From: Lytechinus pictus
Lineage: Eukaryota
Length of the DNA: 64,000 bases
NCBI RefSeq assembly: GCF_037042905.1
Contig: NC_087245.1
Coordinates: 4,216,001-4,280,000 of the forward strand
Reading direction: 5' to 3'
Shown: positions 6,426 through 32,500 of the stretch, one piece after another
Layout of the letters: each line of letters starts with the position of its first letter
Numbering within the stretch: the stretch's first letter is position 1
Made by a program: the position numbers and the translations under genes
The notes under the pieces: model-generated
Database searches by the model: none
What the model was told of the DNA's origin: nothing
The model's input: only the letters and a program-made list of their open reading frames with translations

Positions 6426-6656
6426 CTGTTCAGAACAAAAAAAATAGGGAAAAGGAATAAGTGATAAAAAATGCATTCGAACACATTGACAACACTCTGT
6501 CCCTCTTAGGAGGAACAATGAGTATCACAATGAGTCAAAATGAATAAAAATTGGGAACAAAGCACTGTAGAATAGTCGAACCTGAATACAAAATGTTACA
6601 AGATAATCGTGATATCGAAGAAAAAAAAAACAATAGCAGTGCAGTGGTATGGTATA

Positions 6657-6836
6657 CCTGAATTGGAATTTAACCTCGCTGAAGCATGCACGAGTGCCAT
6701 ATTTCCGCGATAATGACAGGAAAATTCCTCCTATATTGTTAAAAATCGTGTAATCAAATCTCGAACTGGGAGTTAAACGCAGTCACATTTCACATACATA
6801 GTCACATTTCCCAAATACATCTTCAGTCTGATTAAC
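6657..6836 (-). pseudogene. Receptor locus A degenerate Cys-containing ectodomain exon with an in-frame stop
   Basis: AG/GT bounded and in phase with the 6335-6425 exon. Reads VNQTEDVFGKCDYVCEM*LRL. The stop lies in a short duplication of GAAATGTGACT. Confidence 0.35.
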
Positions 6837-17077: not shown

Positions 17078-17927
17078 CTATCCCACTATTTCTGAATCGT
17101 GGCGTGACAATGTACAGTTTTGCTCATTAGCTTCTGAACGTTTGTCAGATGGTTTTTCCGATCTAGCAGTTTTGTTGACTGTTGCATACTCGGGTATTGA
17201 AGAAATTGTATTTTCTTTGCTGACTTCATGACTTGTGTCATCAGGAGTTTCGATCAGGGTTGAACCAATCTCTATTTGTCGTGGAGAACTGGCAGGTTGA
17301 GGCTGGATATCGTGATATGTCGGGCAAGTGTCCGCAATAGGACTGCTTACTTCTGAGTAATGGCTACCGATGGGATCTGATTTTATTTCATAATAGTTTG
17401 GAGATAAAGAATCTGTTTGTAAGTTCAATTTATCTGTAGGGTTGTTAAGACTATTATCAGTCATATTTGAACGTTCTGGTTCATCGCAAAGCTTGTTATC
17501 GGTTGAGAAATAATTCTCGTGTTTATTCGATGTTAGATCAATCTTCATCTGTTGGGATTTAAGGGATGCATGTTGATCATGTGATGTTTCATCTTGGGAA
17601 TGTGATTCCATTTCGAAGACATCATAGTTGTTCATACTTGAGTCTCCTTCTCTCCATGATGGTTTGTAAAGGACATTGTCTATGAGTCCGTGCTGAGGGG
17701 TATCAATCGGCGATTCGAGCTCGTATTGATGTGGCTCCGATCGGACATCATCGGCCGATTCGTACAAAACCGTAACACCATTATCGAGATCACTGCTTTT
17801 AGGAGCAGAATTCTTTACAACTTCGTAGTAATTTGGATCTTCATTGATTAAAACGTTCTTCGTATTATGAACCAAGACATCTGATTTGGGTTTATAGCTT
17901 ATTGTGTCATCTTGCTTCATTGCAGAT
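17078..17927 (-). CDS. Receptor B terminal exon, cytoplasmic tail
   Basis: ORF 17078..17974 with acceptor at 17928-17929. Motifs YYEV, NVLYKP, YYEI, SHYSEV, YHDI, YATV. Confidence 0.88.
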
Positions 17928-20900
17928 CTGAATAAAAACAGAAAAGAAAGAGTATCCCTTTGTGACTTATTCAAACATTAATGAATATTGCTGTTGTTGA
18001 TTTGTGTCAATCTTCTACACAAGCGTTCATATGGGGGTTGGGACTATGGACCCTACCCCTCCCCCCAAAAAATAAATAAATGAAATAAAATGAAGCTTAG
18101 GGAAAAGGTAAAGGAAAGTAAAGTAGAATAGAATAGGGATGAAATTTACTTTTTTTCTGAACATTGTATCAAACTTTTTTTTTTAATTGGTATTAACAAA
18201 GATCAAATTTTTGCTACCTCGTTACGCTTGCTCGCAGTTTTTTTTTAATTGCCTTGCTATAGCCATGCCTGACCCCATAAATTTCTTTGGCCCATAACGC
18301 CACTGAATTACTATATTCAATGTTCAAGTACAGTATAATAATTCTGATCATCCACGGACATCGAAAGTTGGGCCTTTGCGTTATACAAGTAACCACCAAT
18401 ATGATTATTGTTATTATTAAATGAATATATATTTTTTGAATTGCACAATATTCTCCGTCAAAATGGAATATCGGTGTAGATACTTACTGCTTTCTTTTAT
18501 TTTTGATGAAGTACATTGCTAAACAGGCTGCCATCAGTACCACAATGCTAACAACGGTCACTGCGGGTGCTACTACCAAAACTGACATATAGGATTAAAG
18601 GGGGGAAACAAGATGGAATGATTGTCTAATGATCCAGATTGTTGGTAAATTCGGATGTTTTCTAGATATTTAAGAATATATAGAATATATTGACCAATGT
18701 ATTATCATCTCGGAAACGAGGTTATGGGTTTTAATGGATGCACTTGGAAGAAGTTCCTGTGACCCCCTGGTCAAGAGAAAGGGTCATTAAATAATACGTT
18801 GGCCATTAAGGGGTACTCCGGGATAAGAATATGTGTATGTAGATAAATAGAGCAAAATTCACAGAGCAAAATGCCGAAAGTTTCATCAAAATCTGATAAC
18901 AAAAATAGCGGAGTTATTGAATTTTGAAGTTTAGCAATATATTGCGAAAACAGTTTTATACACGTTGTCATGAATATTCATTAGGTGGGCTGATGATGTC
19001 ACGTCCCCACTTTCCTTTTTCCTATGATATTACATTAAATCATAATTGTTTCATTTTTTATTCTGAATCAAATGCGTTCAAGGAAACCTAATTTCCATAA
19101 CACCTAATCACTTTTTTAGTCGCGTTATAACCCAACTCTGTGACGGGCCCCAAAATGATAGAATGAAACATTCCATGATACAATAACAGTTTTAATATTC
19201 GTTATGATTATTAAACAAAGATAAAGAAAATCTACTGAATCCTTACAAAGGCAATGAATTCTTTTTAGTCTTACCAATGATAGAAGATGAGCCCGAGTCA
19301 ATGACCATGGTTACAGTATTCAAGCTCGTGGTATCTGAAATAAGTATCAAGTAGATAAATATTATGAAAAAATAGTAAAATCGAAGTAATGTAGTAAAAT
19401 ACATGTAATCTACCGATTATCAAGACCACTTTAAAAATATGATTAGATTAAGATGTTGATGAATGATAGCGATGACGATTCATATAATTTTGTAATGCGC
19501 CATACCTATCTCCCCCGCCCCCCCCCCCCCAAAAAAAAAAATGAAATGGCTTTCGAGTTATCAGGCGTAAAATGTTAGCAATGACTTTAGGTTTGAAGTC
19601 TACTCTATCAAAATAGATTTATCATTAATGAAGGAAAAGTGGTAAAAGCAGTAATGTTAGTATTATCGATTTACCTGTATGAAGGTGAGGTGTCAACGTC
19701 TTTCTTGTCTGATCTGTTGAAGGGTCACTTGTCATTCTTGGTTGAATCGTAATCATATCTGTATGCAATGTTTACATAATACACAGTATTAAATATGGAT
19801 ACATAAATCAATATTTTAACCTAATGCATTTCCCTGATATTTTTCATCGAAATATTCGAACATCTTTATCAAGTTAAAATAATTAGAGTAATATCCATGG
19901 CCCTGGGAAGCGGGGGTGCTGGGGGTGCTGAAGCACACCCAAGATTTTCTCAGGGGGTGCTGCGTGAGTATTATTTTCCAGAGGAAGCATCCCCTGTAAT
20001 TCTGTGTGTCAAATTGGAGAAATGTATTGAAAATGGTCACCATTTTGCAGTGAAAACTTTTTTTTTTGCTTGTTAAATTTACTTCAGCACCCTAGCATAA
20101 ATGTTTTCCAGGAGGACAAAATGGGTTTGAGAACGTCAAAAGACATAGGTTTCAAACTTGAGGCAAGTTTTAACTGTTTACCCAATATGATTTTTGGGAT
20201 ACTTCTTTTTCTACAAAGTTATGTTTCGAGAAAAACGCTCATTTGGACCCCCCCCCAAAAAAAAAATACATGACACAGGTTGTCGGGAAAAGAAGATGGT
20301 TTCATACCGATACATGCAGGAATTGTACCATTCCATTGAAATATATCAGGACCGCCCACACATTGCAAGGCATCATCGCCCATCAGCTGTTTGCCACCAC
20401 TACAATTCGCCCTCACTATGTCACCAAATCGGTACCTTCCATACACGTTCAGATTGACGTCGGAGATCTCGGGGCAGAATCCTACAGATACTGGAAAAAG
20501 GGTATAAAATGGAAAACCATAGGAGGAAGCAGTATCATCAGTGACGGTATTACCATTGACGATCTGTCAGTAACTCTGATAATGAATCCTCTGTTAATTG
20601 CCAAATTGAGACAGTTTCTCTATTTAATAGCACGGCCCGCTGGTATAACAGTTTTCGAAACTGAAGTGGCTACCCTGGGTAAATATACTTATATTATTAT
20701 TATCATTATTATTAATTATTAAGAATGAGAATACGTCATATTTGTTAATGAAACTTAATTGAATTGTCTTCTAACAATACAATTCGCCCTCACTAAGTCA
20801 CAGAATCAGTATCTCCCTTAATTATTCTAATTGACGCAAGGAATCTTGGGGAACATTGGTTGATTATGTTACGGATTTACATTTCATTGCTTCCCAGATA

Positions 20901-23900
20901 AATGTCAAGAAATTGCAAAAACCATTCCAAGCACTTTCTAAATTTATTCAATTCATGGGTTAAAAGAAGTTTTGATTTTTTTTTCCAAACAAATAAATCT
21001 TTTATGTGAATGCTTACCATTGAATACAATATATGAATCCCTCTGTTTTCTTCCGCAAAACTGTTCTGGATTTCCGGTGCATTTTGTGTTACAGACACGC
21101 TCTTTGGATGAAATCGTGAAGTTGTTCAAGCAGTAACAGGTATCACCCCTTTGAGCAGCAAATGAGGCCGATAGATCCATACATATATCAAGACATTGTT
21201 CATTGGTTAATACTTGACTTGTCTCTGAAATATTGATGTGTGGCAATTCAGAAGAGCGAATCAGAAAGCAACCTAAATATCCAGGTTCTGCAGAAGATCG
21301 GATGGAAAACGGCATTGTTATATAAATTCGAAATTCGAAGATATAGTAATATGAGAACAAAATTGTCAATGTTGGTGGGTGCTTAATAGACAAACTTCAT
21401 AAAGCTGTTCGTAATAAGTTACGAACAACTACGAATGGCTAGTTCCCTTTCTTGAGGTAAATTATGCGCACAAACCTATTCAGTTGTGTTGATTTAGAAA
21501 GAAGGGATCACCAGTCGCTCGTAACTTACGAACAGCTTTATGAAACAAATACCAGTTAAATATGACTTAGAGTCACACTTAAATTCCCAGTTACGTGCGG
21601 TATATTAAAGAGTTAAGTATGACTTAGAGGCACACTTAAATTCCCAGTTGCGTGCGGTATATTAAAACACATCAACGTATTGGATTGCCAAGAGGACGAG
21701 CGCTGTATAATGCGTTCCTCCTGTCCTTTTCTTTCAAAATTTTGAATCTCTTGAGAAAAGAAATGGCAAATTTCATGTCAATGATAATCTTTAATTCATG
21801 TTTATAGAATATGGAATAAGTCAGTTACCAGTTACCTTTGTTCTAATGCACGACCATCTATGAGAATAGAATCACAATAATATTTAATGCTAAAATTCAA
21901 ACTTTGAAATTATACCTACTTTGGCACACAACGCCAGCTGCTTCAATTTCGCTACAGTTGCCCAAGCCATCTGAATCACAATCAGGAACTACTAAAAAAC
22001 AATATCACATTGAAAAAGTAAATCTGTAAAATGAATGTCTCGATGAATGAGATAACAACTAATATTCAAGTCAAGTTTTCATGATGATGAATGTTTTGTG
22101 TAACCAGATTCACTTGCAATAGTTGTATGATGTATTATAATTCAGGATGCTATTTGGATGAAAAGAACAAGACAATAATAGGTGATTTGTTGCATGGGGC
22201 TTATACGACCTGAACACAATTATCAAACTGACTGCTTCTTGGGCGTTGTGACGTTGTGAGCTGACTGACCTTGAAGTGAACATCATTATGGGCTTGGCCA
22301 CACTGCCCCAGTCCTCAGACGACAACGACACTATGGTTATTTCAAGAGCAATTTTGACATTCCCCGAAAATAGAGCCAATCAATATATGTGTCTTTTCAA
22401 ATATATTTATATATTTTTTCTAATTTCTTGCCTCAGTTTATATTTTCTGACCTTAGAGAATTCTAAAGTAAGTAATTTTACTAATTATGAATAAAATTCC
22501 TTACAGACCTTAAATTCTTATTAAGACTTGATATTTATGGAAATCAATAGACATTGTAATGGTGGCCACCGGGGTGGCCAGTTGGGCAACGTACCCTTCA
22601 CCCCCTCCCTTCCCGGTACGTATAGGGATCCCATCCAGACAGATGGAAAAGTGGTCCTGGACCATAATTACATATACTACTTTATATATATTTCAGTCAT
22701 AATGCGGGTCATACTCCCTTGTAAGCATGCATGGTAATAGCAAATGCCGTGGGCATTATCTATCTGATTCATACCCCGGTCCCCGGAGAAGAACATTTTC
22801 TATAGACATCTTTTATCCCTAATTGACAAAGAAAAATACTATTTAGATGTGTTACATCAGCAATATACGACGTTACCTAACGTCCTGTTGTCAATGCTGA
22901 ATATATCTGATTGTAGGCCTCTCCCAAATCTGTTATCATCAGGTAGAAATACTGCATGGCGATATTCAAGCTCTTCACATACCCAGTTAGCTTCATCGAT
23001 TGTCCACCTGTCATTAGATACTACAACACCTCTTAACTCTTCACCATCTTCGTCTATTACTGTCGCCTCCACACGGCCTTCGTTAGGCGAACCACCGTTG
23101 ACCAAGTGAACTACGTAGTGACAAATGAATCGAAAAGGGCTCATAAAACGCAATTTTGTATCAGAATGGAGCTTCGAATCAAAGTTTCGAAGTGACAATC
23201 ACAACGGACATTTCATATTTCTGTTTGTTTTAAACATGGACCTACTACAGTATACTCTAGGTCCATGTTTTAAACAAGGTAACAGCATGGGTAGTAAGGT
23301 ACTGTGAACATTTTTTTCGTTATCAATAATGTTTGATAATATGATCAAGGGAATGATGCTCTGAAGAATAATGGCTAGACATTTAATTACTTTGGAGTGA
23401 AATATTGTTCAATACCAATGCAATCATATCCTCTATTTGAATCAGAATATTTTGTTTTGTACCTTCTACTGATCAATGTAGGATCAATCATGTTATCAAG
23501 GAGGTCATTTCCTCTCACTATCGGACAAGGAAATAAAGACAATGTAAGGCTATAGCTTTCTCTATATTTCATGTATTTAGGGTCGAAGTATATAATTACA
23601 TCAACTCTGTTTAGAATTATTAGTGAATGCGTTGTGGAAAACATATTCTTGAATTATTATACCAGCTGGTAATTTAACATATAATTCATTATGATATAGT
23701 GTCCTATAAAAATAATATGAATCTTGAAATCTTAAAGGATGTTAAGATGATTGAGAAATAAGATTAAAGGGTTGAGACCAAAAATTTAGATTTCTGGCAA
23801 AATTGAAATGTCCAGAATTTTCGGAACGCAAGATTGTAATACAGAATTTTGCGCGCGTACCCAAAAATGTGAAATTTAGAATGTTTATATATATTTTCAT

Positions 23901-28537: not shown

Positions 28538-29507
28538 TTATGACTTCTTCTGCACAGTGGCGTAGCGAGGAAAGGGTTTGTTCTTTTCAAAGGAAGAAGT
28601 AGCAACATATGTAGAAGGATTCTTTGATGCGAAGTCCCCATCGATATCAACATCGATGTATTCATGACTCGTTGATGTCGGGTCATCTGAGCGAACTACA
28701 AGTCGCTGACCACTACGATCTGAGGTCGTAAGCTCTGAAGCATCGTCGTCGATGCCGTGTACAGAGTCGTATCCAGTGAATTTGGTACGTGACGGAGTGG
28801 GTGCTGACTGAGGTTCGATGTCATGATACCTTGGTCCGTCCGTAACAATGTTCCCTGAAAATAGAGGATCTGCTCCTTCGTAATCGACAGGAGTAAATCC
28901 TGGTTTGATTTCATAGTATTTTCTTGAAGCAAAATCAGGTTGTCTTGTTTGGTTATCAGCAGGTTTGTAGAGTATGTTATCAATCATTTTTCCTTCTTGA
29001 TGAAAGCCTCGAGATGTTTCTCCGTCTGGGTATGCATACTCGGAATCATTCGGTGGAAGATCGTTGCCGTTCGGTGATTGCCGAAAGTTATCCGATGCAT
29101 GAATTTGTGTGTTTCCCGCGTTTTCGACTGGTTTGTAAAGAACATTGTCTATGAGTCCATAGCGAGGTGTGTCATTTGGTGAAGTCTGATTGTGTTTCTG
29201 TAGATTCGGATCTCTTCGGATATTATCGGCCGGTTTGTACAAAATATTGTCAATCAGTCCGTACTGAGATGGATTTTGCGATGAGCCCTTATCAGGTTGT
29301 TCATTCGTATCTCTTCGGACATCATCGGCTGGCTTGTACAGGACATTGTCTATGAGACCATCAGTACCTATAATTGTGTCTGGTGCAAGTGTATTTGGTT
29401 TAACTTCATAGTAACTTGGCCCATCGTTGTTGGGAATTTTGTGCATACTATAACTCTTGTTGTTGAACTCCGATTCTCGACGCGTCGGTTCTGGTTTCAT
29501 ATCAGAT
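28538..29507 (-). CDS. Receptor C terminal exon, cytoplasmic tail with four IDN(V/I)LYKP repeats
   Basis: ORF 28538..29542 with acceptor at 29508-29509. Ends RYATVQKKS. Confidence 0.9.
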
Positions 29508-32500
29508 CTACAGAAAATGAAAATCAGATAGGGACAAATCATTCTTTTTTTCAGATGATAGTCTTATTTAAATTACTTTCAAGGGATAAAAGACATGAAT
29601 AAATGATGTAGACCTGAATGGAAAATTAATACAAGCATTTGAAATTTGTGTAAAAATTATTCAGCAGGCAATGTAAACTAATTCATTTTGATATTTCCAG
29701 GAATAATACACTTTTTTTTTGGGGGGGCGAGGTGTTACAATACTTACTCTGTCTTTCTCATTCTGTTGAAGTAGAAGAATATGGATGTAGCAAGAACCGC
29801 TATAATCACCACACTGATAACAGACACAGTTATTGGAACTAGAATTAACAAGGGAAAAGAAACAAGTTATGGATACGCCTCAACCTTTCAAGATATGTTT
29901 ATTACTTTTTATTATTTTCATTTATTCGTGTTTTTCATACTGCATGACCATACTTCACAGTAAAGGCAACACTGTTTTGAACATGATTGTTTCTTCATCA
30001 ATCTAATAAGTTATTATATTGATATTTTGTTTTGATATCCTAGAACCAAATTTTCCATACTGATTAATTGGTTGGCTCATTGACTGGCAGGGAAGTGTAA
30101 TTATATCAAAAAGTTTCTATTAAGGTGTCATCTGTTACTGTAATAAATGACATTGATGCCTTCAATCGTATTCAATTAATAAAGATCAGTTTTTTCCATC
30201 AATAATTTTTATTTCCTAGTAAAACTCAATAATGAATAGCTATGTACTGTTAGCAAACCAACCATAATCAGGAGTCCGACTTAATATCACCTAATATCGT
30301 TCAACTTCTTTTCGAAAATTTGGGCAATCATCCAAAAATAAATAAGTAATCAATTTGGGTTTCCTTAGAAATTCCACAGTTTTATCCCCTCCCATACGTG
30401 ACAGTTTTTGGTGTAGATCAAATATTACACAATCATTCTCTTACCAGCTAAAGATTTGGAGTCCGATCTGGCTCCCATCCCCATACCGCTTACCGTTGAC
30501 ATGGTTGGTGAAATATCTATGTAATGGAAAAAAAGAGTTCTATTTATAATTTTTATTACAAAACAAACTAAAGTCGATTTTGGGAAGAGGGTTTTCATCG
30601 GCCGTACATGTCGATATTTAGATCGTGTTAACAAAGTTACCAGATTAGTTGACAATAGTTATAAAAGCACAACGGATATTAACATAATGCTGGTATTAAT
30701 GAAACAGGGAAGAGTAGTTTAAGAATTATTATTCATGAGAAGAAACGCAGGCCTTACATTTTGACATTTTTATGGCAATTTTTTTCTTTCTGTTGGGCGT
30801 TTTCACAGCATAAATACCAATGAGAGTGGCAGTGATGCCAATCAGAAGGGCATGGCACTGAATTCAAGCCTTGGGAATCCCATTCTCGATCAAAAGATAA
30901 AGGTTTATGCTTATATATTCATTTGATTAGATTGATTATTGATAATCACTGTCATCCTAATGAACCACGTCATCCTATTTTGATTTGTTACTAATCACAT
31001 ATTGTTTTACCTGTCATTATTTCACCTCCTGTACCTGTTGGTGTGAGTGTTGTACCCATTCCTATAGGCCGAGTTATTGGAGAAATGGTAACTATTGGTC
31101 CTACTGTGGAACCATCTGATGATAGATAAGAAATATTTTTCTGTTTTTATGCTCAGGCGCAGATCGGGGGAAATGGGGAACGTGCCCCTTTATTGAGGAT
31201 TCCTTGTTACGTTTTTTTTATATAACTAAAAAAAATTGCTTCCTGCTTGTGGTGATATGTTTTTTTCAATTGTATTTTTGTTCTGTATCCACCCCTGATC
31301 ATGCTTGAATGAAAACGATGTATCTGTTCCTTTTAAATATTCATCTAATTGGATTTAACCCTACATACTCGATTTCCATTCTACTTATACATTTACATCA
31401 CCCTTTTGTCATAATTTTATATCCCAACTCTAAAAGAAAATTTTATATACTTTACGCCTTATTACTTTGCTCTTCTTCTTTAAAAAAAAATCTGTATGAT
31501 CTTGATCCTTGTCTGAGCTAGTCATGTATCATGAAACATAAATCACATTTCTTCCAGTTTATTTTCAATAACATTTTTCAAAACTATTCGTTGCAAACAG
31601 GCACATCGTAAGCCTAAGGCTTAAGCAAAAAAAAAGAGAAAGACATGGGTTTCGTTCATGCGCCATATTCAAGATTTTAAGATAAACCTCATGCATGAAA
31701 ATTTCGTTAATTGAAAATTTTCAAAAGAAAAGGATGAATTTACTTCATACCTACACATGTCGGAATGGTACCATTCCATTGAAATACATCAGGTCCGCCA
31801 ACACATTGCAAGACAGCATCGCCCATCAGCTGTTTGCCACCACTACAATTCGCCCTCACTATGTCACCAAATCGGTACCTTCCATATACGTTCAGATTGA
31901 CGCCAGAGATCTCGGGGCAGAATCCTACATATACTGAGGAAATGAATATAATATATTTTTTTAAATAAATGAATAAACGCATTGACCGTACATTTACCAA
32001 ATTGTTATGCTCTGTAACGAAACACACGTGATGGCTACTAAAGGTTTATGACACGGGTTCAATGCGCTCGATCTTTAGAAATTCCACTATCAATAATTGT
32101 GATATCAATTTCAATTCAATTCAAATTCAATTTATTCTTGATAATAATAAAAACGTCATCAAATTGTACATTCGTATATATAGAAATATCATTACAAGAA
32201 AAGGAGGGCAACAAAAAGTTTACACTTGAAAATAAGAAGCCTCCAAAGAAATGACCATTCAAAAGAATGCACGCTTTATCATTTTTCAGAGATTCATTGC
32301 AATTTATTTTAAGAATAGGGGCAAATAATTTGGTAACACCTGGTCCTGTCATACATTATGAATGTATACCAACGATGAAGAAATAAGTTCGATAAACATG
32401 TTTGTATAAATTCTATACACGCAACTTAAAAACCTCCGGTCCTCTATCAAATTGAAATCAATAATAAAATATAAATCAAATCATGGTACATGTATATAGA

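Follow-up and report, generated by a model that had tools for sequence, protein, structure and literature searches.

Receptor gene B of Lytechinus pictus carries, besides its working CCP exon, a decayed partial copy of such an exon in the adjoining intron. The gene lies in a window of 64,000 nucleotides (contig NC_087245.1, positions 4,216,001 to 4,280,000). A paralogue, receptor C, lies in the same window and has a CCP exon nearly identical to that of B. The question is what the decayed copy, called the remnant here, represents, and whether it explains the likeness of the two working exons. A sequence-only reading had offered two answers. The remnant could be a decayed local exon duplication, or it could be the original CCP exon of B, pushed aside by the gain of a C-like copy.

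The genes of the window are on the minus strand. Their open frames encode SRCR, WSC, and Sushi/CCP domains, followed by a transmembrane (TM) segment and a long tail. Receptor B matches the public L. pictus protein P0151 (LOC129278720) and receptor C matches P0156 (LOC129256018), and the exons of both proteins map to the window at approximately 92-100% identity. B and C each have nine exons, one for the signal, two for SRCR, one each for WSC and CCP, two for the stalk, one for the TM segment, and one for the tail. The cytoplasmic tails of B (17081-17977) and C (28541-29563) contain islands, such as GLIDNVLYKP, that are kept in all three species compared, and the remainder diverges. No literature on this SRCR-WSC-CCP receptor family was found. 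No stretches of N were encountered.

The B CCP exon is 183 nt long, is in phase 1 at both ends, and opens with the codons for V-S-V-G, in agreement with P0151. Two L. pictus transcript contigs place its joints at 21018>20490 and 20308>19758 with GT..AG ends on the minus strand, and a single contig of 1672 nt spans four B exons. The exon matches the Sushi/CCP profile PF00084 (E 8e-5; 23.4 bits, cut-off 20.7) and has the four-cysteine framework. At the DNA level, only B and C match the live exon in the 812-Mb genome; the closest other CCP domain has 47% protein identity to it. The coordinates of the features are collected in Table 1.

Table 1. Positions of the remnant, the CCP exons, and neighbouring features; unprefixed positions refer to the window.
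Feature	Position	Strand	Basis
Pseudo-exon fragment (remnant)	20762-20858, core 20765-20851	minus	Similarity to exon nt ~12-105 of 183
Working CCP (Sushi) exon of B, exon 5	20308-20490	minus	Pfam Sushi match, transcript joints (two runs), P0151 mapping
WSC-domain exon of B, exon 4	21018-21287	minus	Pfam, protein mapping, transcript joint straight onto the CCP exon
Intron 4 of B, host of the remnant	20491-21017	minus	Transcript joints and alignment to L. variegatus
CCP exon of paralogue C (LOC129256018)	31751-31933	minus	92% nt identity to the B exon
L. pictus-specific insertion between remnant and live exon	20627-20719 (93 nt)		Alignment gap against L. variegatus
L. variegatus B CCP exon	L021:7266-7448		
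L. variegatus C CCP exon	L022:8114-8296		
S. purpuratus CCP exons	L024:15639-15821; L025:~6557-6751 (C)		
Orthologous remnant in L. variegatus B intron	about L021:6998-7095		

The similarity between the remnant and the CCP exon is significant, as the sequence-only reading had supposed. In a repeat search, the remnant core pairs with 20388-20474 over 87 nt, free of gaps, at 72% identity. With blastn within the window, it matches the B exon at E 1e-8 and the C exon at 76.6% identity over 77 nt. Smith-Waterman alignment gives a score of 39, where shuffled sequences reach 9.9 +/- 1.4. Genome-wide (812 Mb), the only matches to the remnant are itself and the exon of C, and the remnant is equally far from the B and C exons. 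Three in-frame stops are found when the frame of the live exon is followed, and the first cysteine codon has changed from TGC to TTC. The remnant thus corresponds to the first half of a Sushi domain only, with Cys1 gone. A copy with three stops near the live exon had been described correctly. It does not start at the first codon, as was also proposed; it begins approximately 12 nt inside the exon and ends at approximately nt 105. The description of the copy as indel-free holds in L. pictus and not in L. variegatus, where the copy has 2 extra nt in the middle and lacks 5 nt at its 3' edge. The spacing of approximately 290 bp from the live exon includes the 93-nt dispersed-repeat insertion that is specific to L. 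pictus.

The edges of the remnant are informative. On its upstream side, only 3 of the first 12 nt of the exon are matched. No counterpart of the 3' 78 nt of the exon was found anywhere in intron 4, either in register or in gapped alignments compared with shuffles. The flanks of the remnant likewise bear no likeness to those of the live exon, whether aligned in register or with gaps. There is no AG or GT at the remnant edges, and since the match is limited to nt ~12-105 of 183, the remnant comes without either splice site. No tandem unit comprising the whole exon, its flanks, and its splice sites was recognized, and decay by indels could mask one. A cDNA-templated origin was also considered, on the basis of similarity that seemed to run from an exon boundary and of the motif CAATG, common to the end of the WSC exon. 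It was rejected. The transcript joint puts the exon start at 20490 and not at 20481, 9 nt earlier than this origin assumed, so the coincidence at the boundary vanishes.

The transcripts of L. pictus do not use the remnant. The contigs splice the WSC exon directly to 20490 and skip it, and among the two assembled contigs and the very few raw reads there is none over 20692-20943, where read depth is zero. The remnant is removed with the intron; its rare inclusion would be compatible with two contigs and few reads. Between the remnant and the live exon, the inserted sequence (20627-20719) consists of a piece of a dispersed repeat, seen at 20622-20700, and then an AT-rich microsatellite, and it is absent from L. 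variegatus. The repeat has 486 first-look candidates in the genome, with the best matches 96% identical over 76 nt, and it is covered by RNA reads at very high depth. Scans for tRNA and Rfam families gave no match in the region of the remnant and the insertion. Another repeat was seen in B intron 3 (21448-21699), where tandem units of 56 nt (21554-21609 and 21611-21666) are 94.6% identical. Read depth is extreme in this stretch, and around 21499-21547 many reads join opposite strands. The stretch 21448-21699 is probably an abundant inverted-repeat element.

Three species could be compared, L. pictus, L. variegatus, and S. purpuratus; a region-limited protein search matched only these. In L. 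variegatus, an exon profile search identified two single-CCP receptors, B (LOC121428426, P0016) and C (LOC121428412, P0019). A second B-like locus, LOC121428595 (P0153), is also present in that species. Intron 4 of B aligns collinearly with its L. variegatus counterpart at 84-90% identity, within an aligned block of 90% identity over 703 nt. Indels between the two introns amount to a 2-nt, a 5-nt, and a 93-nt event. The L. variegatus remnant sits at the same position in the intron and has in common with that of L. pictus the TGC>TTC change, a TAG stop, and the 3' end. As both copies carry the same Cys-to-Phe change, the same stop, and the same 3' cut-off, the comparison shows that the ancestor from which L. 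pictus and L. variegatus descend already had a disabled remnant.

The two remnants are 91.6% identical over 95 aligned nt. Identity to the four live exons of Lytechinus is 70-72% for the L. pictus copy and 73-75% for that of L. variegatus, and identity to the S. purpuratus exons lies at 68-72% for both copies. Relative to the live Lytechinus exons, the two remnants have 21-22 changes in common; another 5-6 are seen in L. pictus alone and 2-3 in L. variegatus alone. From the ratio of common to private changes (2-6 in either species), the remnant is approximately 6-7 times older than the L. pictus/L. variegatus split, which is an uncalibrated, relative age. Identity between the species is 0.913 for the remnant vs 0.843 and 0.897 for the flanking intron on its two sides, and the remnant thus drifts at the rate of the surrounding intron. 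The common changes are distributed 9:6:7 over the three codon positions, with no third-position excess among these 22 sites. No remnant was detectable in introns 4 or 5 of L. pictus C, L. variegatus C, S. purpuratus B, or S. purpuratus C. One candidate, a resemblance to the 3' half of the exon in intron 4 of L. pictus C (shuffle fraction 0.013-0.023), was put down to chance, L. variegatus C giving 0.26. Intron lengths (433-1137 nt) gave no hint from position as to which copy is the ancestral one.

The placement of the remnant among the live exons was explored with FastTree and 200 column resamplings of approximately 95 sites. The remnants of the two species form a pair in 100% of the resamplings, on a long branch. 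As a pair, they fall outside the four Lytechinus exons in 52% of resamplings and with the L. pictus C exon in 36%, on these 95 sites. Five diagnostic sites, numbered 20, 30, 77, 89, and 90 from window 20481 and 9 higher in the 183-nt exon, separate Lytechinus from Strongylocentrotus exons. At these, the remnant has two states of Strongylocentrotus and two to three of Lytechinus, the third being a partial one. This mix of states would fit both an origin on the Lytechinus stem and an origin near the generic split with ancestral states kept. The remnant arose once, well before the L. pictus/L. variegatus split, and is at most about as old as the split of Lytechinus and Strongylocentrotus. It could possibly be as old as that split and then have been lost in S. 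purpuratus.

The likeness of the B and C exons has a different history. In L. pictus, the two CCP exons are 92% identical in nucleotides, and the similarity is limited to the exon and a few flanking bases. The S. purpuratus orthologues are LOC754555 (P0154) for B and LOC105445040 (P0155/P0158) for C. When whole proteins are aligned, L. pictus B shares 53% identity with S. purpuratus B and 38-41% with the C proteins. Outside the CCP exon, the orthology of B and C across species is clear, and all other exons group by orthologue. Since clear B and C orthologues exist in S. purpuratus, the B/C duplication is older than the genus split. The CCP exon, with 80-90% protein conservation among all six genes, behaves differently. 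The exons of S. purpuratus B and C have many lineage-specific nucleotide states in common, synonymous ones included. In a tree of the six live CCP exons, these two group in 100% of resamplings, and L. pictus B groups with L. variegatus B in 5%.

Synonymous divergence gives the same picture. Within species, the CCP exons of B and C are separated by a dS of 0.21 in L. pictus, 0.11 in L. variegatus, and 0.12 in S. purpuratus. For the SRCR, WSC, stalk, and TM exons it runs from 0.9 to saturated (1.7 to saturated within Lytechinus), and for the tail it is 0.6-1.5. In the SRCR and WSC exons of B vs C, the best 87-nt window is 61% identical and third codon positions are saturated. Between Lytechinus and Strongylocentrotus, dS is 0.42-0.60 for the CCP exon and 0.22-0.35 for its first 31 codons, vs 0.6-2.4 for the other exons. 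The grouping of the CCP exons by lineage points to recurrent, exon-limited gene conversion in each lineage. Repeated homogenization since the genus split has affected the CCP exon alone, and this exon is also unusually constrained. Recurrent conversion together with constraint accounts for the B/C identity, and no replacement event is needed.

Several observations concern the CCP exon itself. In its 3' half, at 20351-20358 and the homologous sites of L. variegatus, L. pictus B has the same letters as L. variegatus C (GTG GGC GGT), and L. variegatus B and L. pictus C have GTT..GGA in common. Of the four Lytechinus CCP exons, those of L. pictus B and L. variegatus B are the furthest apart (dS 0.25). 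Such incongruent site patterns suggest that B and C may have exchanged sequence around or after the L. pictus/L. variegatus split. In L. pictus, three sites in the 5' part of the exon distinguish B from C; at two of them, 20444 and 20460, the B transcript contig of run X2 has the letters of C, and that of run X1 agrees with the reference. The C-like letters could mark a conversion-tract allele or an assembly chimera across a stretch of 70 nt that is identical in B and C. The S. purpuratus C exon contains, at approximately 6600 of L025, an in-frame tandem duplication of 12 nt that adds YGSR after the conserved NLNV motif. Exon use may also vary in L. variegatus, where isoform X2 of C leaves out the first stalk exon (P0157 vs P0019).

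Taken together, the remnant is probably a non-functional pseudo-exon fragment, copied from an internal piece of approximately 95 nt of a B/C-type CCP exon and located in intron 4 of B. The features by which a pseudo-exon can be recognized were found, namely same-strand similarity in the adjoining intron, stops, no use in mRNA at the limited depth available, and neutral evolution. The decayed local exon duplication of the sequence-only reading thus survives in part: the copy is local and decayed, and it represents an internal fragment and not a whole exon. Most likely, it would have come from the exon of B itself by a short-range copying event, such as a template switch or a small duplication. 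Before the repeat insertion, the ancestral spacing from the B exon would have been approximately 200-280 bp (about 280 nt from start to start). The exon of C is a less likely source, as a misplaced product of ongoing B/C exchange; it is still to be considered since the B and C exons were already alike. No flank homology marks a duplication unit, so mechanism and source (B or C) are a matter of likelihood. The fragment was presumably dead on arrival, never having had splice sites and with its changes spread evenly over codon positions. A somewhat different account, possible and rather doubtful, would make the remnant a time-stamped by-product of long B/C exchange, through misplaced conversion or templated insertion. 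If so, the fossil would keep an intermediate state of the exon and could help to date and orient the concerted evolution.

The alternatives to the fragment differ in how much of an exon was once there. Tandem duplication could have produced a second, entire CCP exon and its flanks, perhaps used as an alternative exon, which then died and eroded on both sides, losing the 5' 12 nt, the acceptor, and the 3' 78 nt by later deletions or replacement. The same strand, the same intron, and the close spacing would agree with this, and indels and insertions do happen in this intron, as the 2-nt, 5-nt, and 93-nt differences between the two species show. A spare CCP exon would also be tolerable, since the exon is symmetric (phase 1/1) and a predicted L. 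variegatus B isoform, X3, leaves out exactly this exon in frame (P0152 vs P0016). Yet there is no residual similarity beside the 95-nt core, although the core itself stayed gap-free, and no third-position excess marks a coding phase. At least two extra deletions would be required, both before the L. pictus/L. variegatus split. A whole duplicate is accordingly judged improbable. A functional role in the intron, as a splicing decoy, poison exon, regulatory RNA, or donor template for conversion, would explain why the remnant is kept in two species. Its conservation is no better than that of the flanking intron, however, its length differs between species, and the lack of transcripts over it, of Rfam or tRNA matches, and of AG or GT at its edges all speak against such a role, which is scarcely credible.

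Replacement of the original B exon by a C-like copy, with the remnant as the displaced exon and the B/C identity as the outcome, is very improbable. It does agree with the age of the remnant, which predates the coalescence of the live B and C exons (70-75% identity to them vs 92-98% among them), and with the C-like state at two of the three B/C-differing sites of the remnant. However, in L. variegatus the C-like exon is already present in B alongside the same dead remnant, and this comparison with the sister species is where the replacement model fails. In S. purpuratus, B and C have the exon in common; its synonymous states are specific to that lineage, and no remnant could be detected. This sharing implies that the identity is recurrent and not the product of a single event. 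B was thus already C-like in both species, which speaks against the remnant as the displaced original exon of B. The original exon would also be expected to be more divergent, as the other ectodomain exons of B and C reach at most 61% per 87-nt window and the remnant is still 70-75% identical to the Lytechinus exons over 95 nt. Both exon ends are absent from the remnant, and its changes follow a neutral pattern. Gene conversion, moreover, works in place and would leave no old exon beside the new one. The remnant is not the cause of the near-identical B and C CCP exon, and recurrent exon-limited conversion accounts for the identity that displacement had been proposed to explain.

The pseudo-exon fragment can be compared with known systems. 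Decayed exon duplicates, or pseudo-exons, are known in introns adjoining the parent exon, and surveys of tandem exon duplication in animal genes, reportedly that of Letunic, Copley and Bork (2002) among them, have catalogued such cases. Like them, the remnant is on the same strand, is derived from an exon, lies in the adjacent intron, contains stops, is unspliced, and decays neutrally. Unlike them, it is an internal piece only, has no splice sites or duplicated flanks, and was maybe never a complete exon. Templated insertions from nearby sequence arise during double-strand-break repair or by template switching in replication. The remnant resembles these in being a copy of approximately 100 nt of sequence found a few hundred bp away, without flanks. 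It differs in having accumulated approximately 0.3 substitutions per site, so that junction microhomology is no longer readable. As in concerted evolution by exon-limited conversion, the parent exon is homogenized between B and C in two urchin lineages, with the remaining gene saturated. The remnant, in contrast, stands outside the homogenized set; conversion has passed it by, and an older state of the exon is preserved in it.

The remnant is an ordinary pseudo-exon fragment. By itself, it matters little, being one further dead piece of exon in an intron. It is useful as a control, since it shows that the B/C identity at the CCP exon did not come from a recent exon transplant. More interesting is that a single exon of otherwise saturated paralogues evolves in concert, independently in Lytechinus and Strongylocentrotus. 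This concerted exon and the low synonymous divergence in its 5' half point to a strong common constraint on the domain.
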